Below are positions 19,613-63,575 of a stretch of 64,000 bases of DNA, piece after piece. The stretch lies in assembly GCF_964204865.1 (NCBI RefSeq), contig NC_135261.1:10788001-10852000 (forward strand). The letters run 5' to 3'. How positions within the stretch are numbered: position 1 is the stretch's first letter; each line of letters starts with the position of its first letter. Made by a program: the position numbers and the translations under genes. The stretch comes from Styela clava. Taxonomy: Eukaryota. The notes under the pieces are model-generated. The model saw only the letters and a list, made by a program, of their open reading frames with translations, was not told the origin of the DNA and ran no database searches.

Positions 19613-22600
19613 ATGAAGATGGATTTTGCATTTTTGTTATGTCTTGCTTCAGTATTTTGTGTAGCCAAGTCTGATGACCCTCCAGGACATCTACAACCTC
19701 TCGGCTCCCATATGCCTCCTATTAAAATCGATGTGATCGATACTCCACCCAATCCACAAGAATTTTTTGATAAATACATTAAAGTCAATAAACCAATCGT
19801 CATCAGAGGAGCGGCAAAAGTTTTTAGCAATTTCAATACTTGGAGAGACGATGATTACTTGAGGTAAGATGTTCATTTTACCGAGAGAAAATGATATTGT
19901 CATATTATTATTGACCTAACTAACAGTTAGGTCAATAATAATAACTAATAATAACTAGAATATCGCTTAGAAACCGAAGACTTATCGATCGAAGGTTAGG
20001 GCATCCCCCAAAACAGTGGTCTTACTCCATAGTGACACCGTGTGTCCCATCACTATTTAAATAATAACTCGCTAATTATAAGACATAATCCATCCAAAAT
20101 CATTCTGATCCGAGCTATGATGAATGCACATGCAAAATTTGGAGCAGATTCAACCTCGCTTTCGTGAGATATCGCGTGCATCTAACACACAGACAAACAG
20201 ACAGACAAATACCTATCAACATACTTACCGATCATAAGATCGATAAGTAATAATAATACCTAATAACTAACAGGGGTTACGTGAAACTAACTACCTTTCC
20301 TTGATCTATGCCTTTGCGCAGGTGGATACTTATGCGTATAACGCAAGGATGCAATAGCAAGAGTGAAAATGACTATTCTATTTAATTCAAGAGTCTTGCT
20401 GCACACGTACACAAATACATTTCTGTAACTTTTCGTCTGATCAAGCATTTTACAACTAGAAATATATTTGTGTAAGTGTGCAGCAAGGCTCTTGAATTAT
20501 TATTGACCTACGTTAATAAATATGGATTTGCATTGACACATGCTTGTATGCATACCTTTATTCCGAACAGCTGCCAGACACAAATTTGTCTATTAATTGA
20601 GTGGGTATTTTAATTCTAGGTTTTGGAAAGTATCCAAACTAAATTTCAAAATTATGCCTTCCAATTTCAAATGTATTTTTTAATTAATTATCATTTTCTA
20701 TATTGCCGCCAGTAATTCACAAAAATCTATCTTTTACAAATGTTTTTGTCATTGATTTTGCTCATTTAAAATGTTGCAATGAAATGTTATTAACCGCACA
20801 AAGATTACTAGTCAACGTAGCACAAAGTTACTTGGACGCTTGAGCTTTAGATTTAATGCATCCGTTGCGGTAGGCACAACGACATTAGTCAACATCATCA
20901 ACATCAACAACACAGGCATCTTTTTTTACAGTGGTATAGGACAGTGGTTCCTAAACTTTTTTTCGCGGCCCCATTTTTATAAAATCGAAAACCACAGATA
21001 TTCGCGACACCACAACAAGAAAAGTTGAATTAAAAAAAAGTGTTTTCTATTCAACTATCTTAATGCGAACAATGCGCATAGATATCGTGTGTACGTGTTT
21101 GAAACCTGGGTGCGGCGTTGTTGTATTATAGTTCCCAACCTTTTTACATTGGCCGATAGGTAACCTCAAATAAAACGACCCCCCAGACCGGTAACAAAAT
21201 ACAGGAATCAATGATACAGATAAAAAAATAACCTTTGTTGCAGTAGAACACTTCAATATTTTGACAAAAAAGAGTTCGAACAAAAAATTTCCGATTGAAA
21301 TCAAATATGAACCATTACATTCACGTGGACGATAAACATTAGTCCGACGAAACGTCAAAAAAAATGGGGAATCCTCAGAAGATTCGATAACACATGACAT
21401 ATAAAAATCGCAAAGAAAAAAACCGAGATTCGCAATATAATAACGGAACATTAGGTCTTTTGGCAATACGTAGACAGACTTCAGACATAAAATGTGGTAG
21501 AAAAAGCGTGAAGAGAAATAGTAAGATTGCTTCTAAATACGGATAAATTTGAAAGTTTTTTTAGTTTTCAGTCTAAACATGGTCAGTCTAGGTTTCATGC
21601 TAAAATATTATGAATTGCTTAATTAGTAATTCGAAAGTAAAACAAAGAACGGAAAAAAAAATAAACATGTACGAATTCGTCTGGGTGCTTGTCATTGATG
21701 CTTAGAATTTTTTTTCGTGTTGCTCTAACTCTAAGGAATTATGTATACATGCAACGCTCTTTATATTATTAATTTAGGGCATTTATTTTTATGTCTAAAT
21801 ACAACAATGCAACATTGTTTGTTCACTAGTGTAGGAAAATGTACACAATTTACTTTATAACGAATAATTTCACATATACAGTTATTAATTCATTTCAAAT
21901 AACTTAATTTGTTTAAACAATTTCTACACCACAGAGAAAAGTACGGTAAATGGATAGCTCCAACAGAAATCGGAAAATTTGAAGCTCAAATATACGGAGA
22001 AATTGTAGAGATGAAATTTGCACGTTTTCTGAGAAGCTATAAAAAGCGAGAACTCTGCATAATTCGAGACATTGTGCCCAAAAACCCAATGAGAGGTAAT
22101 TATATCACTACGTTCGGTAATAAATTTTTGTACTCATATATTGATCAAATTTTTTTCGAGAAAAACACCTGCTGGTCACTTACAAATATATGTAATATAT
22201 TCTAATAAAATACTTACTCTTCTTAGACGAACTATCTTTTATAAAATCTATGTCGTGTGGTGGATTTCAAGAACGGATTTCGAAGGTGATATTTCTATTT
22301 TCCTCCGGATCTGCTCAATCGGCACTACATTGGGATATGCAAGAAAATATGCACTGTATGCTTGATGGTACGAAGAATTGGACAATTATTCACAGGGTAG
22401 ATATTATTGTTCTTTGTATAATAGGTAAATAGGCGAAACAAATAGTATAAATTAGGAGTTTATTGAATTTCGAATTTGCCACCAAATATTTTTTTGGTGT
22501 TTGGAAATTGACTGGGTGAACTGGTTTTACATTGTTTGATCACGCATCGACAGCGACAAGCTACTTATGCTAACAACACGTATTTTCATGCCACTTTTGT

Positions 22601-25600
22601 CCTCCGTAAATGATGGTTCTTACGTGCCGCTTCAGTGTAGTATTCGAGCGTTTTAAATGTGTTAAACTATATTATAATACCGGTAGTAATAAGTCAGTAG
22701 AAACTAGATTGGTCTGTTCTAAAAGAATTTGGCTGTTTTTCCAAAGCAACATTTTATAACGAATGAGTATAATTTCAACCAGGGATGACCAATTCGAATA
22801 AAGTATTCGAATGTATTCGAATATCTCGTCATTCGAATATCGGAATTAACGTTTAAAAAATATCGGATTTTGTGTGACGTCACACATCTGCGACACGGCT
22901 CTCAAAGCGTCTATATTAAATGGTAACTTTCTCGATAGAAACTTACGCATCGCACACACACTCAGCACATGCGCGCTTACGCCACGCTCTCGCCACAAAA
23001 ATCTAGGTCATACACGTTCTCTCGTTTTGCAAAAATCTATTCTTTTCCCGTCTTATTTTATCGTCGCTCAACGCGTGCTTTCTCAGGCGCACGCAACAAC
23101 AAACCAGGTCAAACTATATTATTTCATTCTCTTTCAGCATTTCATTAACTGCGTTCTTTTTACTGTACATAAACACAATTACGCATTGGTAGATTTAAGT
23201 TCTGCGCTACTCATAATAACAATACGGTACACATAAATTAATATATATAAATATACTGTAGGCTTAAATATTAGAATTTGTACAGAGGCCTAATGGATAT
23301 TGGATCGTTGTCGCTTGATTCAGTTGCCTTTAATGCCAATGAATTTTATTACTCTCGCAAAATATACAAAATTATTTAAATACAAAAAGTACTTTTGCCA
23401 ATAAATTATTATGGTAATATCATGGTTCCAAGAACACAAATCATCAAAGAACTCTTTGGCTATCCTTTCATTCGGCCAATTATACAAAGTATACAATTTC
23501 AATTAATTTACTTTGTCACAAGTTGCTAATATTTCTAATGAAAGTTATAAACTATAAAATAATTTGTGTACATATACTGTTGGTTTGTGGCTTTATTCTG
23601 ATATTTCTATTGGAGCTTATTTCCTATTTTACTGGATATTAATTTACTAAAACAAAAATTTGTATGTCTGATTTTAGAAAGTATTCGGAATGCCAGATTC
23701 GAAAATATTATTTTAGAATGTATTCGGAATAGTTCAGTATTCGGAAATGCCATCCCTGATTTCAACAAACTATATATAATATCCATCAATGATTCGATGT
23801 CGCAAACTATATTGTGTTCACATTTGAATAAGTTTATTGAATTTATTATAACAGAAAGATCGACACATACTCCCGGAAACTGATTATTCGCCCGTATATT
23901 CTGGAATTGATCCAAGAAGTGTTGACATGTACAAATATCCCGTAATGCAAGATATGCCTTGGTATCAAGCTTCCGTTGAAGCTGGAGATTGTTTGTTTGT
24001 TCCAAATAAGTGAGTAAAGTTTTTCATTTAGTAATTTTGATATACAAAATATCTATACCGTGCGCATATAACTAAATATATATTTTTAATTAGCGCACCG
24101 CACTACGTGAAATCAGGAGATTCGAGGAATATGGCCTTTTCTATCTGGTTCGATGCCCCGAGATCGCTCAATCTAACAGACTGTCCGGAAAATGAAGCAG
24201 ATTTACCTGACTCTGTGCCAATTGGCCAAAGCGTAATATCAGACTTGGAAAGTGTAAAGTATGCAATAATACGATATTTCAATAAAACATTATCATTATG
24301 ATTATATGGTAGTTGCTTATATGCAATATTATATTGCAATTTTGTGGAACCTCATTAACCTAACTACTGTCTGGCGAAAGTCACGGATCACTTTGAGAAA
24401 CCTCATTAGACGTAACCATACGCTTAATGAAAGCATTGTTTGTTCGACGACAATGAAAGTATAAGCACACTCCTCAGTGAATGATAAAGTAACTGCGTAG
24501 CAAAATTGGTTTATCCCCAATATATAACAGTATCTTTTGAAGCAAACTTTATGATAAATATATTCGAAAATTTTCAGAAAATTTACTACTTATTTCCGCA
24601 TTTACCAAAATGTTCGTTTTTTATTGAAATTGCAATATATTCGGAAGTATTAAAAGGAAATTGTAATGAGAGAAAAAGATAATTCATTGGAAGTTATTTA
24701 TACTTTTAAACTCTTTTGTCTTTACTCTTACCGTATTTGAATAATCGCAATAATTTGTTGATCACTCAGAAGAAGAAAATTACCTTCTAGAAACCTAAAT
24801 TCGGGCTGATTTCATTGCATAAGCACCAAACTTTATATCTTATACCAAAGTTCAGTGAAATAATTGACTGGTCTTGTTTATTGTAATTAAGGGCATTTTT
24901 GTATACAATGATTGATGATCGTACTGATAGACTGTCCGTCATCAAGTTTACCAAAATGGTTCACGCGTTTGGTGCGGACGAGGAGACTTCGTCGGATCTT
25001 CGTGACGTACTCGATAAGGATAAAGACGGTGAGTTAATGTTACCTAAATGTGATATCGTATTTCGAGGCACTGACTAATGGTTATTTATTTAAAATTAAA
25101 TACTGTCTTGTATTCATCATACTGTTTTAATTTTATGAGCATTCGGAACATCGCGGCATTATAAAGAATAACGTCACATCTCACAAATCTATTACCAACC
25201 ATGTATAGGGTTCATGCTGTTGTTCCCTAAACTCCGCGTGCCGAGACTGTGCTTCCTTATTCCTGTCCGCTTTCAAGTCTCTAGTAAAATGTGCAAGTTT
25301 TTTGTTGTATGTTGTATTAAAATAGCGACGTTATAAAAGCAAAAAATAGATATCAAACAGTAAAATAACTTAACTCAAAAATGAGGCAGTAGTAGGTGCG
25401 TGTCGCGAGAGATCCCCGAGTTGAGTGTGGTAACTTTCTTATTCAAAACAGAAGCCAAAACGTGGCAGCGCGACACAGGTCATGTGACCCGAGCCTAGAT
25501 GTCGCTATACATGAAAATTGATCTGAATTGTGCTATTATAAGCATATGAATGGAAAAATTATAGTGTCAATGAATGAAAAGAAACGGCCTTGTTAATTAA

Positions 25601-26104
25601 ATGCTTTCAAAATAGTTCTCGAGCTTGTTTAACTTTGAACTGAACTGCGTGGTTCTTTGTATCTAATATATCATACTATCGTGGTATTTCAATTAGATAT
25701 TACTCCTTGATAAGTTTCCGTATATGCCCTGATAAAGTTTTACTGTATAGAAATGTAGAAAGTCGCGAATTACATTGTTTTTCAAACATCGTCTTTGCTC
25801 CATATATCCTCAAAGTGTCGTGCATATTGAGTATGCAAGATTCCAAATGTGATAAACAAACTGCAGTGGCGTTGCTGATTCCTAATTTTTTTAAGTTTTT
25901 ATTCTCTTTCATACTGAACATTCAGGCAGCATATTTTCATAAAATTACACGTCTTAATATTGTGCAGGTTTTATTACCGAAGAAGAGATCGAAGCTATAA
26001 CAGATGTCACCGATGAGATGTGGTCGGGGCTTTTAGATGAAACAGATGAATACAAAGAGGTAGAAGACTTCAGGAAAAGTAAAAAAGAAAAAGATGAACT
26101 ATAG
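19613..26104 (+). CDS. J1: ER-luminal JmjC (cupin-8) oxygenase with EF-hand and KDEL, 7 exons, 391 aa, intact
   Basis: Exons 19613-19863, 21935-22095, 22227-22396, 23855-24009, 24094-24258, 24892-25028 and 25968-26104; all GT-AG, total 1176 nt, in frame. Hydrophobic N-terminus; PQEFFDKYIKVNKPIVIRGA; LHWDMQENMHCMLDGTKNW; AGDCLFVPNNAPHYV; DKDKDGFITEEE; ends KKEKDEL*. Confidence 0.92.
19954..20250 (+). mobile_element. ~300-bp Helentron/HINE-like repeat, copy 2, in J1 intron 1
   Basis: Subterminal IR acttatcgatc (19980-19990) / gatcgataagt (20238-20248), 3' hairpin and acag microsatellite. Absent from intron 1 of the paralogues. Confidence 0.75.
22780..23758. mobile_element. Non-autonomous hAT element (979 bp) in J1 intron 3
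   Basis: TIR cagggatg / catccctg, 8-bp TSD ATTTCAAC (22772-22779 and 23759-23766), and subterminal attcg(g)aat repeats. Confidence 0.88.
25204..25509. mobile_element. 306-bp insertion in J1 intron 6
   Basis: Absent in J2-J5 (empty site accaacgatgaaaat). Flanked by CATG on both sides, with termini tatag...ctata. Confidence 0.65.
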
Positions 26105-28022: not shown

Positions 28023-31000
28023 ATGAGCATACAATTTATTACATTAGTATGGTTTGTTTCTCTGTCGTGCATTGTAGAATGTGGTGACCCTATGGGACAT
28101 CTTCAATCCCTTGGCTCCCATATGCCTCCGATTAAAATAGATGTGATCCATACTCCACCCAGTCCACAAGAATTTTTTGATAAATACATTAAAGTTAATA
28201 AACCGGTCGTCATCAAAGGAGCTGCAAAAGTTTTAAGCAATTTCAAAACTTGGAGAGATGATGATTACTTGAGGTAAGATGTTTATTTTACTAAGAGAAA
28301 ATGCTATTGTCATATTATTATTATTGACCTACCCTTAATAATTAGGAATTCGCATATTTCTGTGTGCAAGCTTGGATCCCGAACGGCTGTCGTTACAATT
28401 CACGGCTTGGGGAGAAATTCTTGAAATTAGAATCGAAAATTATGCTTTTCAATTTCAAATGCCTTTTTTACTTTTCATTTGCAATATTGTCGTCATAAAA
28501 TCACAAAAAAAAAGTTTTTCTCATGTTATATCATACATTTTGCTCATTTAAAATGTTCAAATCATTTGAAATAATGTGTTGCAAAATTAATAGTCAACTT
28601 TGCACGAAGCTGCTTCGGAGTTTAATCATTAGATTTTAAGCAAATGTTGCAGAGCGCGCTGATTGGTAGTGGTTTATATTTTAAAACCAAGTGGTCGCAA
28701 ATTTGGCCGACATCATCGACTACATACGGAGGCATACGGAGCTTAAAAGATTATCACAGTGGTGCAGGAAAATTTAAATAAAATAATCATATGAGCATTA
28801 TATAACATAAGGAATTATTATCTCATTTTAATTATAACTTAATTTGTTTTAAAAATTTCTACACCACAGTGAAAAGTACGGTAAATGGATAGCTCCAACA
28901 GACCTCGGAAAATTTGAGGCTCAAATATACGGAAAAATTTTTGAAATGAAATTTGCACGTTTTCTAAGAAGCTATAAAAAGCGAGAACTCTGTATAATTC
29001 GGGACATTCTGCCCGAGAACCCAATGAGAGGTAATTATTTACTACTTTCTGTTATAAATTTTGTACTCGTAAACTAAGTAAACTACCATCCGGTCACCTA
29101 CAAATATTTGTCATATATTCCACTAAAATATAATACGTACTCTTTTTAGACGAACTATCTTTTATAAAATCTATGTCGTGCGGTGGATACCAAGAACGGA
29201 TTTCGAAGGTGATATTCCTATTTTCATCTGGTTCTGCTCAATCAGCACTACATTGGGATATGCAAGAAAATATGCATTGTTTGCTTGATGGTACGAAGAA
29301 TTGGACAATTATTCACAGGGTAAATAATATTGTTCCTTGTATAATAAGTGAGATAGGTATTATAAATTATAGGCTTATTGAATTACGTATTTGCCACCAA
29401 AACTAATTTATTGTTTGACAAATTGACTGGATAATCATATTCGTAGAGGCAGCAGTCTAGTAACAGCTATTGATACTAACAGACGCATTTTCATGCAACT
29501 CCTGTCCTCCATGAATGCGATGGCTTCAGTGTAGTTTTCAGCGATTTAAATTGTTTATTGCCTTTTGTATTGTATTTCAAACGACGAATTCAGTAAGACA
29601 TTTGCAGCTGGCTTTTTCCCCGACTACTTCACGACTAGTTTAATCTTCTCCGCGGGCCACACTATTTTTCCAGGTGGGTCGCATTTGGTCGCAAATTCAA
29701 AATTTTAAATCATTCCTAACCTCAGATGTGTATCAACTAATTTGTTATTTCAAACGTGGTGGGGTGTCTCCCTCAAATCTCACATTTTTGCATTAGTGTC
29801 GGGGGATTCGTACGAAAGATACGCAACTTAGACAAGTGCCTGAGCCTGTGTCATGCATATATACTTATACACCAATTCGTTGGCTATTGTAGAGTTCGAA
29901 TTCGAATAAGTGTATGGAATTTACCTTAACAGAAAGATCGACACATACTCCCAAAGTCGGATCATTCGCCAGTGTATTCTGGAATTGATCCAAGAAGTGT
30001 TGACATGTACAAATATCCCGTAATGCAAGATATGCCTTGGTATCAAGCTCTTATTGAAGCAGGAGATTGTTTGTTTGTTCCGAATAAGTAAGAAAAGTTT
30101 GTCATATATTAATTTTAATATACAAAATATCTATACTGTGCGCATATAACTAAATATATTATTTTAATAAGCGCACCGCACTACGTGAAATCAGGAGATT
30201 CGAGGAATATGGCCTTTTCTATCTGGTTCGATGCCCCGAGATCGCTCAATCTAACAGACTGTCCGGAAAATGAAGCAGATTTACCTGACTCAGTGCCAAT
30301 TGGCCAAAGCGTAATATCAGACTTGGAAAGTGTAAAGTATGCCATAATACGATATTTCAATAAAACATTATTATTCTGATTATAAAGTAGTTGCTTATAT
30401 GCAATATTATAATGCAATTTTGTGGAACCTCATTACTACTGTCTGGCGAAAGTCACGGATCACTCTGAGAAGGCTTTTTTGGACGGAACCATACGCTTAA
30501 TGAAAGCATTGTTTGTTCGACGGCAATGAAAGTAAGCACGCTCCTCAGTGAATATGATAAAGTATCCGCGTAGCAAAAGTGGTTGATCCCCGATATATAA
30601 CAGCATCTTTTGAAGCAAACTTCATGTTACATATTAGGAAATGTTCAGAAAATTTACTACTTTTTTCCGCATTTACCAAAATGTTCGTTTTGTATTGAAA
30701 TTGCAAATTATTAGGAAATATTAAAAGGGAATTGTAATAGAAGAAAAATATAATTCATTGGAATTTATTTACACTTTTAAACTCTTTTGTCTTTACGTTT
30801 ACCGTATTTGAATAATCGCAATAATTTTTGATCAGTCAGAAAAAGAAATTAACTTCTAGAAACCCGAATTCGGGCTGATTTCATGGCATAGGCACCAAAC
30901 ATTATATCTTATAACAAAGTTCAGTGAAATAATTGACTGGTATTGTTTATTGTAATCAAGGGCATTTATGTATACAATGATTGATGATCGCACTGATAGA

Positions 31001-31868
31001 CTGTCTGTCATCAAATTTATCAAAATGGTTCACGCGTTTGGTGTGGACGAGGAGACTTCGTCGGATCTTCGTGACGTACTCGATAAGGATAAAGACGGTG
31101 AGTTAGTGTTAAACTACAAGTGATATTGTATTTCAGAGCACTGACTAATAGTTATTTATTTAAAAATAAATACTGTCTTGTATTCATCATACTGTTTTAT
31201 TTTAATGAGCATTCGCAACATCGCGGTATTATAAAAAACAACGTCACATCTCACAAATCTAATACCAACGATGAAAATGGATCTGGATTGTGCTATCATA
31301 AGCATATAAATGGAAAAAGTATAGTGTCAATGAATGATAAAGAAACGACCCTGTTAATTAAATTCCTTTCAAAATAGTTTTCGAGCTTGTTTAACTTTGA
31401 ACTGAACAGCGTGGTTCTTTGTATCTAATATATCATACTATCGTGTTATTTCAATTAGATACTATTCCTTGATAAGTTTTTTTATATGCCCTGATAAAGT
31501 TTTTCTGTATAGAAATGTAGAACGTCGCGAATTACATTGCTTTTCAAACATCGTCTGTGCTCCATATATCTTCAAAGTGTCGTGCATATAGAGTATGCGA
31601 GATTCCAAATGTGATAAATAAACTGAAGTGGCGTTACTGATTCCTAAATATTTTTCAAGTTTTTATTTCCTTCCATACTGAACATTCAGGCAGCATATTT
31701 TCACAAAATTACACGTCTTTATATCGTGCAGGTTTTATTACCGAAGAAGAGATCGAAGCTATAACAGATGTCACCGATGAGATGTGGTCGGGATTTTTAA
31801 ATGAGGCAGATGAATACAAAGAGGTAGAAGACTTCAGGAAAAGTAAAAAAGAAAAAGAGGAACTATAG
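28023..31868 (+). CDS. J2: JmjC-EF-hand-KEEL paralogue, intact
   Basis: Exons 28023-28273, 28870-29030, 29150-29319, 29933-30087, 30172-30336, 30961-31097 and 31732-31868, the same lengths as in J1. HWD...H intact; ends KKEKEEL*. Confidence 0.9.
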
Positions 31869-33410: not shown

Positions 33411-36038
33411 ATGAGCATAGAATTTGTTACATTAGTATGGTTTGTTTCTCTGTCGTGCATTGTAGAATGTGGTGACCCTATGGGACATCTTCAATCCCTT
33501 GGCTCCCATATGCCTCCGATTAAAATAGATGTGATCCATACTCCACCCAGTCCACAAGAATTTTTTGATAAATACATTAAAGTTAATAAACCGGTCGTCA
33601 TCAAAGGAGCTGCAAAAGTTTTGAGCAATTTCAAACTTGGAGAGATGATGATTACTTGAGGTAAGATGTTTATTTTACTAAGAGAAAATGCTATTGTCAT
33701 ATTATTATTATTGACCTACCCTTAATAATTATGAATTCGCATATTTCTGTGTGCAAGCTTGGATCCCGAACGGCTGCCTCTACGAATATGATTATCCAGT
33801 CAATTTGTCTAGTAACAGCTATTGATACTAACAGACGCCTTTTTCATGCAACTCCTGTCCTCCATGAATGCGATGGCTTCAGTGTAGTTTTCAGCGATTT
33901 AAATTGTTTATTGCCATTTGTATTGCATTTCAAACGACGAATTCAGTAAGAAATTTGCAGCTGGCGTTTTTCCCGACTACTTCACGACTAGTTTGATCTT
34001 CTCCGCGGGCCACACTATTTTTCCAGGTGGGTCGCATTTGGTCGCAAATTCAAAATTTTAAATCATTCCTAACCTCAGATGTGTATCAACTAATTTGTTA
34101 TTTCAAACGTGGCGGAGTGTCTCCCTCAAATCTCACATTTTTGCATTAGTGTCGGGGGATTCGTACGAAAGATACGCAACTTAGACAAGTGCCTGAGCCA
34201 GTGTCAGGCATATATACTTATACACCAATTCGTTGGCTATTGTAGAGTTCGAATTCGAATAAGTGTATGGAATTTACCTTAACAGAAAGATCGACACATA
34301 CTCCCAAAGTCGGATCATTCGCCAGTGTATTCTGGAATTGATCCAAGATGTGTTGACATGTACTAATATTCCGTAATGCAAGATATGCCTTGGTATCAAG
34401 CTCTCATTGAAGCAGGAAATTGTTTGTTTGTTCCGAATAAGTAAGAAAAGTTTGTCATATATTAATTTTAATATACAAAATATCTATACTGTGCGCATAT
34501 AACTAAATATATCTTTTTAATAAGCGCACCGCACTACGGGGAATTGGGAGATTCGAGGAATATGGCCTTTTCTATCTGGTTCGATGCCCCGAGATCGCTC
34601 AATCTAACAGACTGTCCGGAAAATGAAGCAGATTTACCTGACTCAGTGCCCATTGGCCAAAGCGTAATATCAGACTTGGAAAGTGTAAAGTATGCCATAA
34701 TACGATATTTCAATAAAACATTATTATTCTGATCATAAAGTAGTTGCTTATATGCAATATTATAATGCAATTTTGTGGAACCTCATTAACACTGTCTGGC
34801 GAAAGTCACGGATTACTCTGAGAAGGCCTTTTTGGACGGAACCATACGCTTAATGAAAGCATTGTTTGTTCGACGGCAATGAAAGTAAGCACGCTCCTCA
34901 GTGAATATGTTAAAGTATCCGCGTAGCAAAAGATACCCCGATATATAACAGCATCTTTACCGTACCGTTTACCGTATTTGAATAATCGCAATAATTTTTG
35001 ATCAGTCAGAAGAAGAAATTTACCTTCTAGAAACCCAAATTCGGGCTGATTTCATGGCATTAGCACCCAATATTATATCTTATAAAAAGTTCAGTAAAAT
35101 AATTGACTGGTCTTGTTTATTGTAATTAAGGGCATTTATGTATACAATGATTGATGATCGCACTGATAGACTGTCCGTCATCAAATTTACCAATATGGTT
35201 CACGCGTTTGGTGTGGACGAAGAGACTTCGTCGGATCTTCGTGACGTACTCGATAAGGATAAAAACGGTGAGTTAGTGTTGAACTACATGTTATATTGTA
35301 TTTCAGAGCACTGACTAATATTTATTTATTTAAAAATAAATACTGTCTTGTATTCATCATACTGCTTTATTTTAATGAGCATTCGCAACATCGCGGCATT
35401 ATAAAAAACAACGTCACATCTCACAAATCTAATACCAACGATGAAAATGGATCTGGATTGTGCTATCATAAGCATATAAATGGAAAAAGTATAGTGTCAA
35501 TGAATGATAAAGAAACGACCCTGTTAATTAAATTCCTTTCAAAATAGTTCTCGAGCTTGTTTAACTTTGAACTGAACAGCGTGGTTCTTTGTATCTAATA
35601 TATCATACTATCGTGTTATTTCAATTAGATACTACTCCTTGATAAGTTTTGTTATATGCCCCGATAAAGTTTTTCTGTATAGAAATGTAGAACGTCATGA
35701 ATTACATTGCTTTACAAACATCGTCTGTGCTTCATATATCCTCAAAGTGTCGTGCATATTGAGTCTGCGAGATTCCAAATGTGATAAATAAACTGAAGTG
35801 GCATTACTGATTCCTAAATATTTTTCAAGTTTTTATTTCCTTCCATACTCAACATTCAGGCAGCATATTTTCATAAAATTACACGTCTTTATATCGTGCA
35901 GGTTTTATTACCGAAGAAGAGATCGAAGCTATAACAGATGTCACCGATGAGATGTGGTTGGGATTTTTAAATGAGGCAGATGAATACAAAGAGGTAGATG
36001 ACTTCAGGAAAAGTAAAAAAGAAAAAGAGGAACTATAG
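33411..36038 (+). pseudogene. J3: pseudogene
   Basis: 1-bp deletion in exon 1 (ttcaaacttgg at ~33633), exons 2-3 deleted (junction 33773-33809), and a premature TAA in exon 4 (34364-34366). Confidence 0.92.
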
Positions 36039-40500: not shown

Positions 40501-41413
40501 TTAAGGGCATTTATGTATACAATGATTGATGATCGCACTGATAGACTGTCCGTCATCAAATTTACCAATATGGTTCACGCGTTTGGTGTGGACGAAGAGA
40601 CTTCGTCGGATCTTCGTGACGTACTCGATAAGGATAAAGACGGTGAGTTAGTGTTGAACTACATGTTATATTGTATTTCAGAGCACTGACTAATAGTTAT
40701 TTATTTAAAAATAAATACTGTCTTGTATTCATCATACTGTTTTATTTTAATGAGCATTCGCAACATCGCGGCATTATAAAAAACAACGTCACATCTCACA
40801 AATCTAATACCAACGATGAAAATGGATCTGGATTGTGCTATCATAAGCATATAAATGAAAAAAGTATAGTGTCAATGAATGATAAAGAAACGACCCTGTT
40901 AATTAAATTCCTTTCAAAATAGTTCTCGAGCTTGTTTAACTTCGAACTGAACAGCGTGGTTCTTTGTATCTAATATATCATACTATCGTGTTATTTCAAT
41001 TAGATACTACTCCTTAATAAGTGCTTTTATATGCCCTGATAAAGTTTTTGTGTATAGAAATGTAGAACGTCGCGAATTACATTGCTTTACAAACATCGTC
41101 TGTGCTTCATATATCCTCAAAGTGTCGTGCATATTGAGTATGCGAGATTCCAAATGTGATAAATAAACTGAAGTGGCGTTACTGATTCCTAATTATTTTT
41201 CAAGTTTTTATTTCCTTCCATACTGAACATTCAGGCAGCATATTTTCATAAAATTACACGTCTTTATATCGTGCAGGTTTTATTAGCGAAGAAGAGATCG
41301 AAGCTATAACAGATGTCACCGATGAGATGTGGTTGGGATTTTTAGATGAAACAGATGAATACAAAGAGGTAGAAGACTTCAGGAAAAGTAAAAAAGAAAA
41401 AGAGGAACTATAG
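37580..41413 (+). pseudogene. J4: full 7-exon copy with an exon-1 frameshift
   Basis: Same AAAA->AAA deletion as J3 (37802-37804), giving FKLGEMMIT*. The remaining exons are present and look open, ending KEKEEL*. Confidence 0.8.
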
Positions 41414-46300: not shown

Positions 46301-47276
46301 ATGTATACAATGATTGATGATCGCACTGATAGACTGTCCGTCATTAAATTTACCAAAATGGTTCACGCGTTTGGTGTGGACGAAGAGGCTTCGTCGGATC
46401 TTCGTGACGTACTCGATAAGGATAAAGACGGTGAGTTAGTGTTGAACTACATGTTATATTGTAATTCAGAGCACTGACTAATAGTTATTTATTTAAAAAT
46501 AAATACTGTCTTGTATTCATCATACTGTTTTATTTTAATGAGCATTCGCAACATCGCGGCATTATAAAAAACAACGTCATATCTCACAAATCTAATACCA
46601 ACGATGAAAATGGATCTGGATTGTGCTATCATAAGCATATAAATGGAAAAAGTATAGTGTCAATGAATGATAAAGAAACGACCCTGTTAATTAAATTCCT
46701 TTCAAAATAGTTCTCGAGCTTGTTTAACTTTGAACTGAACAGCGTGGTTCTTTTTATCTAATATATCATACTATCGTGTTATTTCAATTAGATACTACTC
46801 CTTGATAAGTTTTTTTATATGCCCTGATAAAGTTTTTCTGTATAGAAATGTAGAACGTCGCGAATTACATTGCTTTACAAACATCGTCTGTGCTTCATGT
46901 ATCCTCAAAGTGTCGTGCATATTGAGTATGCGAGATTCCAAATGTGATAAATAAACTGAAGTGGCGTTACTGATTCCTAAATATTTTTCAAGTTTTTATT
47001 TCCTTCCATACTCAACATTCAGGCAGCATATTTTCATAAAATTACACGTCTTTATATCGTGCAGGTTTTATTACCGAAGAAGAGATCGAAGCTATAACAG
47101 ATGTCACCGATGAGATGTGGTCGGGATTTTTAAATGAGGCAGATGAATACAAAGAGGTAGAAGACTTCAGGAAAAGTAAAAAAAATAAGAGGAACTATAG
47201 AATTAAAACATTCAAAAACCTTGACCTTAGATTTTGTGAAAATTACCATGAATGTAAATTTTTTGCAATGATTTAA
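43359..47276 (+). CDS. J5: paralogue with an intact catalytic domain but a frameshifted C-terminus (no KEEL)
   Basis: Exons 43359-43609, 44209-44369, 44482-44651, 45266-45420, 45505-45669, 46294-46430 and 47065-47276. The last exon is 1 nt short before the usual TAG (ends 47200) and reads on as KKNKRNYRIKTFKNLDLRFCENYHECKFFAMI*. Confidence 0.78.
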
Positions 47277-49156: not shown

Positions 49157-52100
49157 ATGAAAATAGAATTTGTTACATTAGTATGGTTTGTTTCTCTGTC
49201 GTGCATTGTAGAATGTGGTGACCCTATGGGACATCTTCAACCCCTCGGCTCCCATATGCCTCCGATTAAAATAGATGTGATCGATTCTCCACCCAGTCCA
49301 CAAGAATTTTTTGATAAATACATTAAAGTTAATAAACCGGTCGTCATCAAAGGAGCTGCAAAAGTTTTTAGCAATTATAAAACTTGGAGAGATGATGATT
49401 ACTTGAGGTAAGATGTTTATTTTACTAGAAAAAAATGCTGTTGTCATATTATTATTATTGACCTACCCTTAATATTTATGAATTCGCATATTTTTGTGTG
49501 CACGCTTGGATCCCGAACGGCTGTGGTTTTAGTTCACGGCTTTGGAAGAAATTCTCCAAATTAGAATCGAAAATTATGCTTTTCAATTTCAAATGTCTTT
49601 TTTACTTTTCATTTGCAATATCGTCGTCATAAAATCACAAAAAAAAAAGTTTTTCTCATGTTCTATCATAGATTTGGCTCATTTAAAATGTTGCAATCAT
49701 TTGAAATATTTTGTTGCAACATTAATAGTAAAATTTGCACAAAGCTGCTTTGAAGTTTTATCATTAGATTTGAAGCAACCGTTGCAGAGCGCGCTGATTG
49801 GTAGTAATTGATAGTTTAAAACCAAATGATAGCAAATTTGGGCAACATCATGGACTGCATACGGAGGCATACGGGGCTCAAAAGATTATCACAGTGGTGC
49901 AGGAAAATGTAAAAGTTTAATCATATGAGCATTATATAACACGAAGAGTTATTATTTCATTTCAATTATAACTTAATTTGTTTTAACAATTTCTACACCC
50001 CAGTGAAAAGTACGGTAAATGGATAGCTCCAACAGAACTCGGAAAGTTTGAGGCTCAAATATACGGAAAAATTTTTGAAATGAAATTTGCACGTTTTATA
50101 AGAAGCTATAAAAAGCGAGAACTCTGTATAATTCGGGACATTCTGCCAGAGAACCCAATGAGAGGTAATTATTTACTACTTTCTGTTATAAATTTTGTAC
50201 TCATAAGCTAAGTAAACTACTATCCGGTCACCTACAAATATTTGTCATATATTCCACTAAAACGTACTCTTCTTAGACGAACTATCTTTTATAAAATCTA
50301 TGTCGTGTGGTGGATACCAAGAACGGATTTTGAAAGTGATATTCCTATTTTCTTCTGGTTCTGCTCAATCAGCACTACATTGGGATTTGCAAGAAAATAT
50401 GCATTGTTTGCTTGATGGTACGAAGAATTGGACAATTATTCACCGGGTAAATAATATTGTTCCTTGTATAATAAGTGAGACAAATATCAACTAATTTGTT
50501 ATTTCAAACGTGGCGGGCTGTCTCCCTCAAATCTCACATTTTTGCATTAGTGTCGGGGGATTCGTACGAAAGATACGCAACTTAGACAAGTGCCTGAGCC
50601 AGTGTCAGGCATATATACTTATACACCAATTCGTTGGCTATTGTAGAGTTCGAATTCGAATAAGTGTATGGAATTTACCTTAACAGAAAGATCGACACAT
50701 ACTCCCGAAGTCGGATCATTCGTCAGTATATTCTGGAATTGATCCAAGAAGTGTTGACATGTACAAATATCCCGTAATGCAAGATATGCCTTGGTATCAA
50801 GCTCTCATTGAAGCAGGAGATTGTTTGTTTGTTCCGAATAGGTAAGAAAAGCTTGTCATATATTAATTTTGATATACAAAATATCTATACTTTGTGCATA
50901 TAACTAAATATATTTTTTCAATTAGCGCGCCGCACTACGTGAAATCAGGAGATTCGAGGAATATGGCCTTTTCTATCTGGTTCGATGCCCCGAGATCGCT
51001 CAATCTAACAGACTGTCCGGAAAATGAAGCAGATTTACCTGAAATGGCGCCAATTGGCCATAGCGTAATATCAACCCTGGAAAGTGTAAAGTATGTCATA
51101 CTCATAGTACTATATTATCATGAAACTTTATTATTATTATGAAGTAGTTGATTGCTTGAATTTCACAATACAATTTTGTGGAAACTTATTAATCAAATTA
51201 CTAACTGGCGAATTACTACTGACACTACTGGATCACTTTAAGAAGCAATTATATACGAAACCACGCGCTTGATATTTAATTACAGCACTGTTTGTTCGTC
51301 GACAAATTTATCGAATTGAAAACACGTTTTCAGTGAATATGGTAAAGTATTTGAGTAGCAAAAGTGGTCATTCTCAGATGGGCCCGATATAGACCAAAAT
51401 CTTTTTAACATATGCTACTTATTCTCGAATTTTTCACACTGTTTGTTTGGTATTAAAAATGCAATTTCATAGATAATATTGAAAATACCCGACCTCTTTT
51501 TTCTAAAAATTTGCCAATTCGGCTTTCATGACGTTATTATCTTTTTACCCAGAGCAAAATATTTACTCTTCAAGACGATACGAATAAGCAAGTTAAAATA
51601 ATATTTGAACACATATATATATGATCGAGAAAAAGGATAGAAATTCATCAAAAGTTATTTACATCTTCAAGTCAATTTCTTTTATTACACCTATTCCATT
51701 TTTACTGTATTTCAAAAATTGCTAATTCTTTGGGTTTTTATCTGTTTTAATTTGTAGCCAGAAAAATGAATTTATCTTTTAAAAACCTAAAATGCGGCTG
51801 ATTAAATAACATTAACACCTACCAATATATACTATAACAAATCCAGTGAAATAATGACCAGTTTTGTTTATTGTAATTCAGGGCCTTTTTGTATACAATG
51901 ATAGATGATCGAAGTGATAGACTGTCCGTCTTCAAGTTCAACAAAATGGTTCAGGCATTTGGCGCAGACGAGATGACTTCGTCGGAACTTCGTGACGTAC
52001 TCGACTCGGATAAAGACGGTGAGTTAGGCTTGAACTACATGTGGTATTGTATTACAGAGCACTGACTAATAGTTATTCATTCAAAAATACTGTATTGCAT

Positions 52101-52588
52101 CCATCATATTTTTCATTTTTCATAAAGATAGGCCTGGATTGTGTTATTGTAAGCATTTCAATCAAAAAACTATGTTGTCAATGAATGATAAACAAATGAC
52201 CCTGTTATTTAAATTGCTCTTTGAATAGTCCTCGAGCTTGTTTGAACTTGCGTGCTTACTTGTACGTAGTATATCCTTAAAGTATTGTGCATATTGAGTA
52301 AGCGATATTCTGAATGCGAATAAAACCAAACTGGCATTAATGATTCCTTATGAAGACAAAAGTGCAATGGTTTCATAAGTTTTGTTTCTTCTTGACTGAA
52401 ACATTTAGGCAGCATATGTTCATAAACTTACAGGTATTTATATTCATGCAGGTTTCATTACCGCAGAAGAGATCGAAGCTTTAACGGATGTCACAGATGA
52501 GATGTGGCCGGTATTTTTATTTGACACAGATGAATACAAAGAGGTAGAAAACTTCAGTAAAAGTAAACAAGAAAAAGAGGAACTATAA
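49157..52588 (+). CDS. J6: JmjC-EF-hand-KEEL paralogue, intact
   Basis: Exons 49157-49407, 50004-50164, 50277-50446, 50687-50841, 50926-51090, 51882-52018 and 52452-52588. LHWDLQEN, APHYV, DSDKDGFITAEE; ends KQEKEEL*. Confidence 0.9.
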
Positions 52589-54195: not shown

Positions 54196-54423
54196 GAGTA
54201 GAATATGCGCAATCAAATACACTGAAGTTTTAGACTTCGGCAGCGAAGGTTCAGGTTTTAAAAAAGAATTCGTTGTTATTTCAGACTCATGCTGTCCAAT
54301 GTTTGTACCAACTTCGCTTCGCGGGTGAATTACTTCTGGACTAAATTAAAATTTTCCCATCATATAGTACTTCTTTCCAAATGATTGAAATTGTCATGAA
54401 ATGCTATGCACCAAATTTATAAA

Positions 54424-55294: not shown

Positions 55295-55765
55295 AATTTA
55301 AAGTTTTTTTTACGAAACTACAACATGTATCAAATATGTATGAGGCTAGATATTGTAACAATCAACTCAATGAGAGGTAAGCTCAAAAACATACGTTCAC
55401 TCACGCAATGAACTCTTATGCCTGATGTATCTTTGGCGGCAGTAAACTATCTACCGGTATATACTTTATTATTGCAAGTTTCCCATGCTTATTTTATGGT
55501 GAGGTTACGTGCACATTCATAATTTATAATCTACCTGCGACCGCACAAAGTTCAATTGTGTTCAATTCAAGATATGACCTATAGATTGATGTAGTGAAGT
55601 ATCAAAATTGATTATTCATGATTCCCAGTTATATATGTTTTGTTTCCACCAGATGAACTGTCTCTTATGTATTTCAAGATCTGGTCATCGGCACTGCATT
55701 AGGATCATGAGGAAAATATGCATTGTATGCTTGGCGATGCACAGAATTGGACAATCTTTCACTGG
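55295..55765 (+). pseudogene. Decayed remnant (exons 2-3) of a J8-type JmjC gene
   Basis: tttaaagttttttttacgaaactacaac...aatgagag|gtaag (ends 55376) matches J8 exon 2. ccaccag|atgaactgtctcttatg...gca ctg cat tag gat cat gag gaa aat atg cat tgt matches exon 3, with a stop and an internal deletion. Confidence 0.8.
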
Positions 55766-56987: not shown

Positions 56988-59900
56988 ATGAAGATCGAAT
57001 TTTCATTTTTGCCATTTCTTGCTTCAGTATTTTATGTAGCCAAGTGTGATGACCCTCCAGGACATCTACAACCTCTCGGCTCCCATATGCCTCCGATTAA
57101 AATAGATGTGATCGATACTCCACCCAATCCACAAGAATTTCTTCATAAATATATTAAAGGTAATAAACCGGTCGTCATCAAAGGTGCTGCAAAAGTTTTT
57201 AGCAATTTCAATACTTGGAAAGATGATGATTACTTGAGGTAAGTTGTTTATTTTACTAAGAGAAAATGCTAGCGTCATAATATTATTGACCTACCTTAAT
57301 AATTATGGATTTGCAATAGCACATACTAAAACATAGATAATACACATAATACTGAATTCTGTAATCTGTTTTTTGTTTGCCAAGCTTGCTTACCGAAAAG
57401 CAACCAGAAACAGATTTTGGGGAGTGATTGTGGATACTGTTTAATTCACGATACAATTGGCTAACATAAGGCATAACAGGGCTTATTACTTGATTTTATT
57501 ATTACAGTGGTGTAGAAAAAAACGCAAATATCCAGTCATATGAATATTATATGACAAATAGAATTAGTTCATTTCAACTATCTAACTTAATTTGTTTTAA
57601 CAATTTCCACACCACAGTGCAAATTACGGTAAATGGAACGTTCCTACAGAAGTCGGAAAAATTGAGATTCAATTTCCAGATATTATACCAATAGAGTTTG
57701 CACATTTCCTCAAGAGCTATAAAAAGCGGGATCTCTGCATAATTCGGGACATTGTTCCCGAGAACCCAATGAGAGGTAAAGATTTTATCAAGGTCTACAA
57801 CAAATTTTGTACTGATATATAGGGAAAATGTTTCGTGAGAACAAGCAGCTGGGCACATACGAACATGTGCGATATATTCAATTAAAATACTCTTACTCTT
57901 CTCAGACGAACTATCTTTTATAAAATCTATGTCGTGTGGTGGATTCCAAGAACGGATTTCGAAGGTTATACTCCTATTTTCATCCGGTTCTGCTCAATCG
58001 GCAATACATTGGGATATGCATGAAAATATGCATTGTTTGCTTGATGGTACGAAGAATTGGACAATCATTCACAGGGTAAATAATATTGTTCCTTTCATAA
58101 TAGGCGAAACAAATATTATAAATTTTAAGTTTATTGAATTTGCCACTAAAAACATTTGTACATTGTTTAATCACGGGTGTATTCGTGAAAGCAAAGTAGT
58201 GACAAGATATTTATGCCAACAGCACGCATTTGTCTAGATTTTGATAGATTCTTTTTGTAAGGAACACATTATGAAATCAATTTTCAAAAAATTGAAATCA
58301 ATTTTCAAAAAATTGATTTTGTTTATATCTATTATTAAATTGAAAACACATTTACAGGTCATTACTTGCTTTCAACCTAGTACGAATCACTTTAAATACT
58401 TTACAATTACGATATTTTTGGTGACGTTTTCGATATTTATTCGCTGTTTGACTACTACTTAAAATCTTTTCAATAGATTAATTATTGATATAAAGTCTCA
58501 GAATTGTATTCTGTATAACGTCGAAATAAAAATCAAATATAGATTTCCTAGCGTCTCGACGTACCCTGCGGATTGTGATCGTTGGTGCGAGTCGCTTAGA
58601 GATTTAGTCAACGATACCTTTGACACTCAATCATTCATTACTCGAACGGTTTCAGTGTCTATACAGTCTAATTTCCTGGCGATTTGAAAGTGTCAAACTA
58701 TCTTATATACTAATACTAAGTTAGTAGAAACTAGATTGTTGTGTCTATGTGTATATATAGAATATTGCTTTTTTCGAAAGCATTATTTCAAAACGAATTA
58801 GTATAATATTTACCAATTATATATCATATACAGCATACACCAATGATTATTTGGCGCAAATTATTGTGTTCACATTCGAATAAGTGTGTCAAATTTATTA
58901 CAACAGAAAGATCGACATATACTCCCGAAGGCGGATTATTCGCCCGTATATTCTGCAGTTGATCCAAAGAGTGTTGACATGTACAAATATCCCGTAATGC
59001 AAGATATGCCTTGTTATCAAGCTTTCTTACAAGCCGGAGATTGTTTGTTCGTTCCAAATAAGTAAGAAATTTTTTTCATATATTAATTTTGACGAAATAT
59101 CTATACTGTGCGCATATAACTAAATATATATATCTTTTCAATTAGCGCACCGCACTATGTGAAATCAGGAGATTCGAGGAATATGGCTTTTTCTATCTGG
59201 TTCGATGCCCCGAGGTCTCTCAATCTAACAGACTGTCCAGAAAATGAAGCAGACTTGCCTGACTCGGCGCCAATTGGCCATAGCGTGATATCAGATTTGG
59301 AAAGTGTGAAGTATGTCGTAATACTAGGTTTCCATAAAACATTATTATTATTAAGATGCACTGTAGTAATTTACAATATTAATTTCACAATACAATTTTG
59401 TGTAACCTCATTAACTGTCTGGCAAAAATCATGGTTTATCTCAGTTGGGATCAATATAAGACAAAATCTTTTTAAAATAAACTTAAAGTTTTGGAAGATC
59501 TTGAAAAAATTTCTAATGCAATATCATGGAAGATAATAAAAATCGCCGACCCTTTTTTTCTCAAATTCGATAAATTTGGCTGTGAAGTAAAATCATTCTT
59601 CGCCCCGGATTTGAAACAAAAAAAAAAATTTTCAATTTATAGACGATAATCAACAACGTTATAAAGTATAATAATGAACAACTTTATTTTCTCTTTACTT
59701 GAAGCAAATCTGACAAAATACTTACTCCCCTAGACGCAAAGAATAAACAAGTAGAAATAATATCTGAACACATATGATCAAAAAAGGGGATGGAAATAGA
59801 AATTTATCAACAGTTATTTGATTTTCTCAGTCAATTATATTTATTTACAATCGCTAATTTTTGATTAGTTACTTTGTAACCAGAAAAAGGTACTTAACTT

Positions 59901-60567
59901 TTAGAAACTCAAATGAGGTTGATTTCATGACATAAGCATAAGCACATTATATCCCATGATAAAAACGAAAAGTGAAATATTTGATCATTTTGGTTTGTTG
60001 TAATTCAGGGCATTTATATATACAATGATAGATGATAGAAGTGATAAACTGTCCGTCATCACGTTTGACGAAATGGTTCGCTCATTTGGTGCAGACGAAG
60101 AGACTCCGTCGGAACTTCGTGACGCACTCGACACGGATAGAGACGGTGAGTTGAGCTTTAAATACAAGTGATATTTTATTTCGGAGCATTGACCAATATT
60201 TATTTATTTAAAAATAATATTGTATTGTAATTATCACAGTGTTTCATGTTATATTTTTATGAAACATAAAAATGAACATCGCAGAAATAGCAAACTCCGA
60301 ATGCGTTTAATTAACAAAACTGGCGTTAATGATTCCTTATTAGGGCAACAGCGTCAGAGTCATTTTTTCTTCGTCTTGAAACTTTTAGACAGCCTATGTT
60401 CATGAATTTACATGTCTTTATATTCGGCAGGTTTTATTACCGCAGAAGAGATCGAAGCTTTAACGGATGTCACAGATGAGATGTGGTCGGGATTTTTATT
60501 TGACACAGATGAATACGAAGAGGTAGAAGACTTGGGCAAAAGTAAACAAGAAAAAGAGGAATTATAG
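56988..60567 (+). CDS. J7: JmjC-EF-hand-KEEL paralogue, intact, 390 aa
   Basis: Exons 56988-57238, 57618-57775, 57906-58075, 58907-59061, 59146-59310, 60009-60145 and 60431-60567. IHWDMHEN, APHYV, DTDRDGFITAEE; ends KQEKEEL*. Confidence 0.9.
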
Positions 60568-62290: not shown

Positions 62291-63575
62291 ATGAACATAG
62301 AATTTATTACATTGGTATGGTTTGTTTCTGTGTTGTGCATTGCAGAATGTGATGACCCTAAAGGACATCTTCAACCTCTCGGGTCTCACATGCCACCAAT
62401 TAAAATAGATGTCCTAGATACTCCTCCAACACCTCAAGAATTTTTCGAGAAGTATATCAAGGTTAATAAACCAGTCGTCATCAAAGGAGCAGCTAAAGTA
62501 TTTAGCAATTTCAAGACGTGGCAAGATGACGAATATCTCAAGTAAGATTTAAGAAGTTTCACTCAACCAGCAATTAATCCAAAACTAAGCCCACTTTCTC
62601 ATTTGAGCATACCTTTATGTGACTGTAATTAGCTCGCCGTAGGCGGCGAGAATAGTTTTCAGTTAATCTCATACTACCGATAAGATACAAATAAATTTTA
62701 CCATAAACATACAAGTCCGATAAGGTGTAATTTTAGTCATGTTAGAAGGTTGGTTATAAAGCACCAGTTATATAAGACAAATAATGCGTATTGTTTTTTG
62801 AAAATTATATATATATACTAACATTACAGAAAAGTTTTCAATCCTACTATACATTTGTATATTGCAGAAAGAAATACGGTAAATGGCTTGCTCCAGTAGA
62901 AGTTGGAAAATACGAAAAAAAAATTGTACTAATTCCATTTAAAGTATTTTTACGAAACTACAACAAGCATCCAATATGTATATCACGAGATATTGTACCG
63001 CTCAACCCAATGAGAGGTAAGACAAAAACTTAATTGCACTCGCACAATGAAATGTTGTGACTGATGCATGTTTCACCAATTTTTGACCCCAGAAAACTCT
63101 CTATATTATTTATAAAATGGCGCGTTTGCATGTACTCAACCATCATGTCAAGTCAAAATAAATAAGCACCCGCGAACATTCATTTACATGCACACTCATA
63201 ATTTATAATCGACCTGCGTGAAAAAAGTGTCTAAGTTAGTAATTGCTGATTTGCTGTTTTTCCGAAATGAACAAGAACATCGCGTACCTGAAAACATCCA
63301 CAAGATTTGAGATCTCAAAATAAAACATATAGATTAAAAAAATTGAAGTAATAAAGTCTAATTTATTTTTATGATTCATACCTATATATATTCTGTTTCC
63401 ACCAGATGAACTGTCTCTTATGCAATCAATGTCATGTGGCGGATATCGAGAGCGGATAGTCAGAGTGATGTTTCTATTATCATCGGGATCATGCCAATCA
63501 GAATTGCGTTGGAATAATGAGGAAAATATGCATTGTATGCTTGACGGTACAAAGAATTGGACAATCATTCACAGG
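62291..63575 (+). CDS. J8: divergent paralogue, exons 1-3 only (continues past the window), iron ligands substituted
   Basis: Exons 62291-62541, 62868-63016 and 63406-63575 splice in frame. SELRWNNEENMHCMLDGTKNW replaces SALHWDMQEN. Confidence 0.85.

Follow-up and report, generated by a model that had tools for sequence, protein, structure and literature searches.

A tandem gene array in Styela clava predicted to encode endoplasmic reticulum JmjC oxygenases with an EF-hand pair and KDEL-type tails

A stretch of 64,000 nucleotides of the Styela clava genome (assembly GCF_964204865.1, contig NC_135261.1, denoted C16, positions 10,788,001 to 10,852,000; hereafter the window) carries a tandem array of genes for JmjC/Cupin_8 proteins, and the question raised by this locus is what kind of protein its copies encode and in which compartment of the cell that protein works. 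A preliminary description of the same DNA had proposed a family in which a signal peptide, a JmjC domain, an EF-hand and a KDEL or KEEL tail are combined in at least eight copies. The analysis reported here indicates that the array probably encodes soluble Fe(II)/2-oxoglutarate (2OG) oxygenases of the JmjC-only type, located in the lumen of the endoplasmic reticulum (ER) and forming a distinct clade, a reading in which residence in the ER, binding of Ca2+, enzymatic activity and substrate type are all inferred.

Gene model, protein architecture and predicted fold

Self-comparison of the window with one unit as the query detected direct tandem repeats of 4.2-8.4 kb on the + strand, running from ~19.6 kb to the window end, and together with exon mapping identified eight tandem seven-exon units, all on the + strand, within gap-free, AT-rich sequence (~34% G+C). 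Gene models were assembled from GT/AG pairs that keep the frames open, which left one sensible solution per intron with good donor and acceptor contexts. Enumeration of the splice sites thus yielded a single consistent seven-exon model in which every intron is GT..AG and the phases are 2, 1, 0, 2, 2 and 1, and the same exon boundaries recur across all copies. The splicing has an independent check in the RefSeq proteins XP_077974562.1, XP_039253392.2 and XP_039253386.2, which agree at every residue with our models of copies 2, 5 and 6, respectively.

Copy 2 was used as the reference for the protein (Table 1). The spliced product of ~391 residues that had been put forward in the preliminary description was recovered with every one of its motifs, namely the leader (residues 1-20), H172-W-D174, GTK187NW, the N-glycosylation sequons NWT and NLT, H249, the loop DKDKDGFITEEE, an acidic tail and KEEL, and the interruption of the EF-hand loop by intron 6 was likewise found where it had been expected, within the Gly codon. 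The leader of the array proteins consists of a hydrophobic stretch of ~14 residues past a short N-terminal region, and small residues precede a conserved D-P-x-G-H. H172, D174, K187 and H249 were aligned to the H-x-D, Lys and distal His of JMJD5, and their equivalents are present in copies 1, 2, 4, 5, 6 and 7 and not in copy 8; S169 and N178 stand opposite the JMJD5 Ser and Asn that we take to be 2OG contacts. Copy 1 ends in KDEL and copies 2, 4, 6 and 7 end in KEEL; copy 5 has neither.

The Cupin_8 profile of Pfam matched the Styela array protein (taken from the cluster that includes the proteins of copies 2, 5 and 6) at 93.8 bits (2e-26; cut-off 27.4), and JmjC_2 matched the same protein at 7.5e-7. 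Taken alone, exons 1, 3 and 4 gave colinear pieces of Cupin_8 (profile positions 1-41, 133-168 and 185-226), each below the cut-off, and exon 3 gave a weak match to JMJD7 in the PDB (E = 0.35). A HMMER search with exon 3 returned a 391-residue protein with 100% identity at residues 139-194, together with many proteins of 380-450 residues. An AlphaFold model of the copy 2 protein, calculated with an alignment of 90 relatives, had a mean predicted local distance difference test score (pLDDT) of 88.5 and a predicted template modelling score (pTM) of 0.85. The best PDB match by sequence, for one array protein, was JMJD5 (5e-11, 45 bits), with scores of 34 bits to JMJD7 and 31 bits to TYW5, and a profile of the family scored JMJD5 at 117 bits, JMJD7 at 92, TYW5 at 77 and FIH at 65. 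Foldseek, run with the copy 2 model, gave a probability of 1.00 for JMJD5, JMJD7, FIH and TYW5, with E-values of ~1e-17 to 1e-19 for JMJD7, TYW5 and FIH and, for the JMJD5 target, a template modelling (TM) score of 0.86, a root-mean-square deviation of 2.4 Å and 22% identity. The array proteins are accordingly classed as JmjC/Cupin_8 members by their Pfam match, the double-stranded beta-helix fold of the predicted structure and the aligned iron triad and Lys.

The C-terminal module was assessed separately. The criterion for an EF-hand loop was a helix on either side and, within the loop, Asp or Asn at the first, third and fifth positions, Gly at the sixth, a hydrophobic side chain at the eighth and Glu at the twelfth; DKDKDGFITEEE has the canonical 12-residue pattern and lies between helices 331-341 and 351-355 of the AlphaFold model. 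With E-values between 2e-8 and 2e-6, positions 294-364 of the family profile matched those of calmodulin, NCS-1 and calcineurin B, and these matches to calmodulin-type pairs suggest that the module is an EF-hand pair; a Styela paralogue from contig C1 (described below) passes the EF-hand_5 cut-off (27.2 bits). As judged from sequence and model, the first EF-hand appears degenerate and the second canonical, in agreement with the short paired strands predicted at residues 314-316 and 348-350.

Range, conservation and phylogenetic placement of the family

Conservation was counted over 135 relatives of 340-560 residues, chosen irrespective of leader, tail or HxD..GxK motif. HxD..GxK was found in 131 of them, a hydrophobic N-terminus in 115 and G-H-L-x-P-L-G just past the leader in 107, and 113 (~84%) end in xxE[LF], with KDEL, KEEL, RDEL, HDEL, HTEL, HEEL, NDEL and HDEF among the variants; a strict retrieval pattern, defined as C-terminal [KRHQSA]-[DENQ]-E-L, was present in 77/135. 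The architecture of signal, JmjC domain, EF-hand and KDEL-type tail that had been proposed at the outset is supported by the Cupin_8 match, the fold, the EF profile and the leader and tail in ~85% of these relatives. A narrower alignment of 90 relatives was selected partly by HxD..GxK and a [DE][LF] end, and in it H-x-D and Lys are constant (90/90), C148, C181, C240, C276, S169 and N178 are invariant (90/90), and positions 1, 3, 5 and 12 of the EF loop are kept in 88-89/90. Exactly four cysteines occur in 37 of the 90 mature proteins, and an N-x-S/T sequon stands just before Cys276 in 45. As an additional observation, the motif G-H-L-x-P-L-G-S-H that follows the leader has the same place in all copies; the majority of relatives retain it, sponges and tunicates included, and the model predicts it confidently.

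The relatives come from sponges, cnidarians, placozoans and one ctenophore, from echinoderms, hemichordates, amphioxus and tunicates, from molluscs, annelids, one brachiopod and one priapulid and, outside animals, from dinoflagellate transcriptomes. Matches in the ESM Atlas were confined to Cupin_8 clusters of molluscs, cnidarians and chordates. No vertebrate, arthropod or nematode member was present among the best 120 matches, which is an observation and no proof of absence.

In RefSeq the array genes are named "jmjC domain-containing protein E-like" (jcdE-like), "JMJD5-like" and "JMJD7-like", and database names also bore out the earlier expectation that relatives would be found under JMJD5-, JMJD7- or TYW5-like labels. 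Such names would suit a reading in which the array encodes ordinary cytosolic or nuclear enzymes of the JMJD5/JMJD7 type and the leader and tail are accidents of annotation. This reading is highly improbable: leader, four cysteines, EF-hand pair and xDEL tail recur across many phyla, in gene models made independently of one another and in contigs of transcript size, and far closer orthologues of the named enzymes are present elsewhere in the Styela genome, scoring 275 bits to human JMJD5 (locus L024; 45 for the array family), 304 bits to JMJD7 (L022; 34 for the array family) and 415 bits to TYW5 (L023; 31 for the array family). As Styela has these orthologues separately, the family constitutes a distinct clade and not the JMJD5, JMJD7 or TYW5 orthologue.

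A maximum-likelihood tree (quick search, LG+C20) of 54 family members and the Styela paralogues, with supports from the Shimodaira-Hasegawa-like approximate likelihood ratio test (SH-aLRT), likewise set the family apart from the JMJD5, JMJD7 and TYW5 paralogues (SH-aLRT 92), so that nesting of the family within one of these known enzymes, which the preliminary description had named as grounds for abandoning its proposal, was not observed. Five copies from C16 formed one clade (99), sister to a pair from contig C1 (100), within tunicates (99). The main clade is roughly in line with animal phylogeny and is accompanied by at least three more old subclades, one of them a long form; deep placements are uncertain as the outgroup branches are long. 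The family is best regarded as an ancient, separate clade that extends from sponges to tunicates and includes some protists and that differs from the ER protein JMJD8 as described in the literature, and the array as a lineage-specific tandem expansion in Styela clava. Literature searches for a JmjC protein with KDEL returned nothing relevant, and no functional study of the family was found.

Several further Styela loci were noted. The genome contains many more Cupin_8 genes, several as single open frames (L022-L025, L027): the JMJD5, TYW5 and JMJD4-like genes and another Cupin_8 gene are each one uninterrupted frame, and the JMJD7 match also falls within one, unlike the array family with its six introns, and these single-frame genes may have retrogene-like origins or have lost introns. 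A second cluster of three paralogues lies on contig C1 (8.988-9.018 Mb; L019-L021), 55% identical in exon 3 and annotated as proteins of 402-403 residues with SDEL or FDEL ends. An intronless long form on contig C8 (~5.518-5.520 Mb; L026:352-2448, - strand) encodes 699 residues that start with a leader and end in KTEL, with a G-H-L-type motif, a Cupin_8 domain whose H-x-D is canonical and several EF-hands; its close relatives were found in tunicates only, and the tree groups it with sponge and crinoid long forms.

Intact, damaged and metal-free copies

Exon 3 matched 13 places in the genome, comprising eight in the window, two downstream on C16 and three on contig C1; the eight matches in the window correspond to seven genes and one relic, as copy 3 has no exon 3. 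The C16 array comprises ten genes, eight of them inside the window. The earlier count of at least eight copies is correct for gene copies, although several of these carry damage and another is catalytically dead; complete architecture and catalytic residues occur together in only four of the eight (copies 1, 2, 6 and 7). The coordinates of all copies and of the copy 2 features are given in Table 1. The ratio of non-synonymous to synonymous substitution rates (dN/dS) was 0.25-0.42 among copies 1, 2, 5, 6 and 7.

Table 1. Coordinates of the array features within the window; each copy starts at the ATG of exon 1, exons are listed in order, and residue numbers refer to copy 2.
Feature	Position	Strand	Remarks
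Copy 1	19613..26104	+	Intact; 391 residues; KDEL end; open frame, introns GT..AG
Copy 1, exons	19613-19863, 21935-22095, 22227-22396, 23855-24009, 24094-24258, 24892-25028, 25968-26104	+	Stop 26102-26104
Copy 2	28023..31868	+	Intact; 391 residues; KEEL end; identical to XP_077974562.1
Copy 2, exons	28023-28273, 28870-29030, 29150-29319, 29933-30087, 30172-30336, 30961-31097, 31732-31868	+
Copy 2, hydrophobic leader (residues 1-20)	28023..28082	+	Maximal 9-residue hydropathy 2.3
Copy 2, motif G-H-L-x-x-L-G-S-H after the leader	28095..28121	+	G/H/G in 84-86 of 90 relatives
Copy 2, catalytic core in exon 3	29251..29298	+	H172-W-D174 29251-29259; C181 29278-29280; K187 29296-29298
Copy 2, sequon NWT	29299-29307	+	Directly after K187
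Copy 2, exon 5 features	30179..30262	+	His249 30179-30181; sequon NLT 30248-30256; invariant Cys276 30260-30262
Copy 2, EF-hand loop DKDKDGFITEEE (residues 342-353)	31082..31751	+	Gly codon interrupted by intron 6 (31098-31731)
Copy 2, C-terminal KEEL	31854..31865	+	ER-retrieval type
Copy 3, pseudogene	33411..36114	+	Exon 1 33411-33660 with 1-nucleotide deletion; exons 2-3 deleted
Copy 3, remaining exons	34286-34440, 34525-34689, 35131-35267, 35902-36114	+	Exons 4-7; stop in exon 4 at 34364-34366
Copy 4	37580..41413	+	Sole lesion a 1-nucleotide deletion in exon 1 (37580-37829); exons 2-7 open to KEEL; stop 41411-41413
Copy 5	43359..47276	+	416 residues; catalytic and EF parts intact; identical to XP_039253392.2
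Copy 5, exons	43359-43609, 44209-44369, 44482-44651, 45266-45420, 45505-45669, 46294-46430, 47065-47276	+
Copy 6	49157..52588	+	Intact; 391 residues; KEEL end; identical to XP_039253386.2
Copy 6, exons	49157-49407, 50004-50164, 50277-50446, 50687-50841, 50926-51090, 51882-52018, 52452-52588	+
Exon 3 relic, 3' half, alone between copies 6 and 7	55680..55765	+	80% identity over 88 nucleotides; E 5e-4; one internal TAG
Copy 7	56988..60567	+	Intact; 390 residues; KEEL end
Copy 7, exons	56988-57238, 57618-57775, 57906-58075, 58907-59061, 59146-59310, 60009-60145, 60431-60567	+
Copy 8, 5' part	62291..64000	+	Exons 62291-62541, 62868-63016, 63406-63575; exons 4-7 past the window end

Copy 3 is regarded as a true pseudogene because of the deletion in exon 1, the loss of exons 2 and 3 and the stop in exon 4. 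Copies 3 and 4 have the 1-nucleotide deletion in common, which shortens a run of four A in exon 1, and the RefSeq model for copy 4 (XP_039253390.2) is a leader-less protein of 282 residues. Exon 7 of copy 5 has an altered A-rich stretch just ahead of the tail, and the resulting frameshift eliminates KEEL and lengthens the tail. Both the A4 to A3 change of copy 4 (37780-37800) and the A-rich change of copy 5 (47160-47190) lie within homopolymer-rich sequence, and as the previous RefSeq versions of these two genes encoded 391-residue proteins with KEEL, the two lesions may be polymorphisms or assembly errors. The supposition that copies 3 and 4 are equally dead was rejected, copy 4 having a single homopolymer lesion, as was the supposition that all eight copies are functional, in view of the frame-breaking changes in copies 3, 4 and 5 and the stop in copy 3.

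The array region as first delimited closes at 63575, where exon 3 of copy 8 stops. Copy 8 was completed from the genome sequence (locus L015:2161-3420), and its seven exons join into an open frame for 390 residues with a leader, a KTEL end and DSNDDDSISADE as its EF-type loop. It has R-W-N where H-W-D is expected and Tyr for the distal His, so that all three iron ligands are lost. Its dN/dS against the other copies was 0.16-0.18, indicating that the metal-free copy is also constrained, and on these grounds it looks like a conserved pseudo-enzyme.

Downstream of the window on C16, copies 9 (L016:1403-5052) and 10 (L018:1172-4979) are intact-looking and have KEEL ends, and a broken fragment with exons 5 and 7 only and in-frame stops lies between copies 8 and 9 (C16:10856658-10857902; L015:6658-7902). 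Exon 5 of copies 1 and 5 (24094-24258 and 45505-45669) is 98.8% identical and exon 1 of the same pair ~90%, a mosaic of identity that suggests gene conversion inside the array. Upstream of the array, in a locally G+C-richer stretch, an open frame of 529 residues (11882-13717, + strand) contains internal repeats of ~45 residues and a DUF1759 match (5e-8), as is typical of gag-like proteins of Pao/BEL-type retroelements.

Proposed activity, alternatives and significance

Leader, EF-hand pair and KDEL-type tail together suggest that proteins are probably hydroxylated inside the secretory pathway. In the proposed mechanism, a cleavable leader would bring the protein into the ER, and the KDEL or KEEL tail would ensure its return from the Golgi via the KDEL receptor. 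The double-stranded beta-helix would hold iron through H172, D174 and H249 and 2-oxoglutarate through K187 with S169 and N178, and the most likely reaction would be side-chain hydroxylation, of the Arg, Lys, Asn, Asp or His type, on proteins or peptides of the secretory pathway. The C-terminal EF-hand pair would bind Ca2+, which is abundant in the ER, and stabilise or gate the enzyme, and the four invariant cysteines probably form two disulfides.

Among known enzymes, JMJD5 (KDM8) is an arginyl C-3 hydroxylase and JMJD7 a (3S)-lysyl hydroxylase; JMJD5, JMJD7, TYW5 and FIH are cytosolic or nuclear. JMJD5 is the best solved relative of the array family by both sequence and fold, and its H-x-D, Lys, distal His, Ser and Asn align with those of the family; however, it lacks the leader, the predicted EF-hand pair, the xDEL tail and the four conserved cysteines of the array family. 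JMJD7, TYW5 and FIH belong to the same Cupin_8 structural group and are similarly devoid of the secretory-pathway features. The nearest known analogues in domain logic are P4HTM, the ER transmembrane prolyl 4-hydroxylase with EF-hands, and ASPH, both 2OG oxygenases of the ER lumen joined to Ca2+-binding EF-hand or acidic regions; these are membrane-anchored and have the P4Hc and Asp/Asn beta-hydroxylase folds, respectively, whereas the array proteins have a JmjC/Cupin_8 fold and are predicted to be soluble with a KDEL-type tail. CREC proteins such as reticulocalbin and calumenin are soluble ER EF-hand proteins with HDEL or HDEF tails, which also occur in the array family, but they have no catalytic domain, and the likeness is confined to the logic of targeting and Ca2+ binding.

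The kind of substrate bears on a second alternative, in which the proteins are active oxygenases of the secretory pathway that modify a non-protein substrate (amino acid, metabolite, lipid or glycan) or act extracellularly after secretion. TYW5, which shares the structural group, has tRNA as its substrate, the sequence itself revealed no features of substrate binding, and ~16% of the relatives as well as copy 5 have no xxEL end. This alternative is nevertheless judged unlikely, as JMJD5, JMJD7 and FIH, the characterised proteins nearest to the family in sequence and fold, are protein hydroxylases and the retrieval signal is kept in ~84% of members across very long evolutionary distances, a breadth of retention which favours a site of action in the ER or early Golgi.

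Several points weigh against a Ca2+-binding ER oxygenase. Of the Pfam matches that had been recommended as a check in the preliminary description, Cupin_8 lay far above its cut-off, but the EF-hand match on the Styela array proteins (17 bits) fell short of the curated cut-offs (25.9 and 30). The leader was judged by hydropathy and length alone, and expression and splice junctions of the array genes rest on RefSeq models and splice-site logic. The invariance of the H-x-D, Lys and C-terminal columns in the alignment of 90 relatives is partly circular, given how these were chosen, which leaves the counts over 135 relatives unaffected. Finally, a JmjC protein of the ER need not be an enzyme, given that a lack of catalysis is suspected for the ER paralogue JMJD8 (PMC5684140).

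JMJD8 is described as an ER protein with an N-terminal signal peptide and JmjC as its sole domain; it carries His at the position of the acidic iron ligand and is suspected of being inactive (PMC5684140). Like the array family it belongs to the JmjC-only group, and it enters the ER by an N-terminal signal (PMC5684140), as is predicted for the array proteins. In a further alternative, the family would be the counterpart, in invertebrates, of vertebrate JMJD8 and would serve mainly as an ER scaffold or chaperone-like protein without catalytic function. No other ER JmjC protein with a signal peptide is known, and JMJD8 clusters with JMJD7, JMJD5, TYW5, FIH and HSPBAP1 (PMC5684140); replacement of the family by a divergent JMJD8 would fit the lack of a vertebrate member in the best 120 matches, and copy 8 demonstrates that purifying selection can maintain a version devoid of metal. 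Yet JMJD8 has H-x-H and no extra domain, and neither KDEL nor an EF-hand is mentioned in its published description, whereas the array family has the canonical triad (H-x-D in 131/135), with Lys, distal His, Ser and Asn invariant, a predicted EF-hand pair and an xDEL retrieval tail. No JMJD8 sequence was among the matches of the database searches or of the PDB profile search. Indirectly, the automatic NCBI names of more than 100 members never cite JMJD8, although it is available as a naming reference. On this evidence, the JMJD8 alternative is considered quite improbable, and the predicted ER oxygenase is retained as the preferred reading.

A more specific proposal, which is speculative and to which a low yet appreciable probability is assigned, is that the members of the family are hydroxylases that install hydroxyarginine and hydroxylysine in secreted peptides and in adhesive or structural proteins of marine invertebrates, in which case the Styela expansion (more than ten genes, one of them metal-free) would reflect substrate specialisation and the EF-hand pair would couple activity to ER calcium. 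This lead derives from the modification of a Styela peptide, styelin, in combination with the arginyl and lysyl specificities of the nearest characterised relatives, JMJD5 and JMJD7. Styelin of Styela clava carries dihydroxyarginine and dihydroxylysine (PMC4881601).

Sequences of the family have long been present in databases under misleading JMJD5-, JMJD7- or TYW5-like names. To our knowledge, the characterised JmjC-only hydroxylases are all cytosolic or nuclear, and JMJD8 is the sole known ER member and is without proven activity; for the hydroxylated Arg and Lys residues of marine invertebrate peptides, the family provides concrete candidate enzymes. A catalytically complete, ER-retained JmjC clade, joined to a Ca2+ sensor, extending from sponges to tunicates and seemingly missing from vertebrates, would, if true, represent a new class of secretory-pathway oxygenase beside the prolyl, lysyl and aspartyl hydroxylases.

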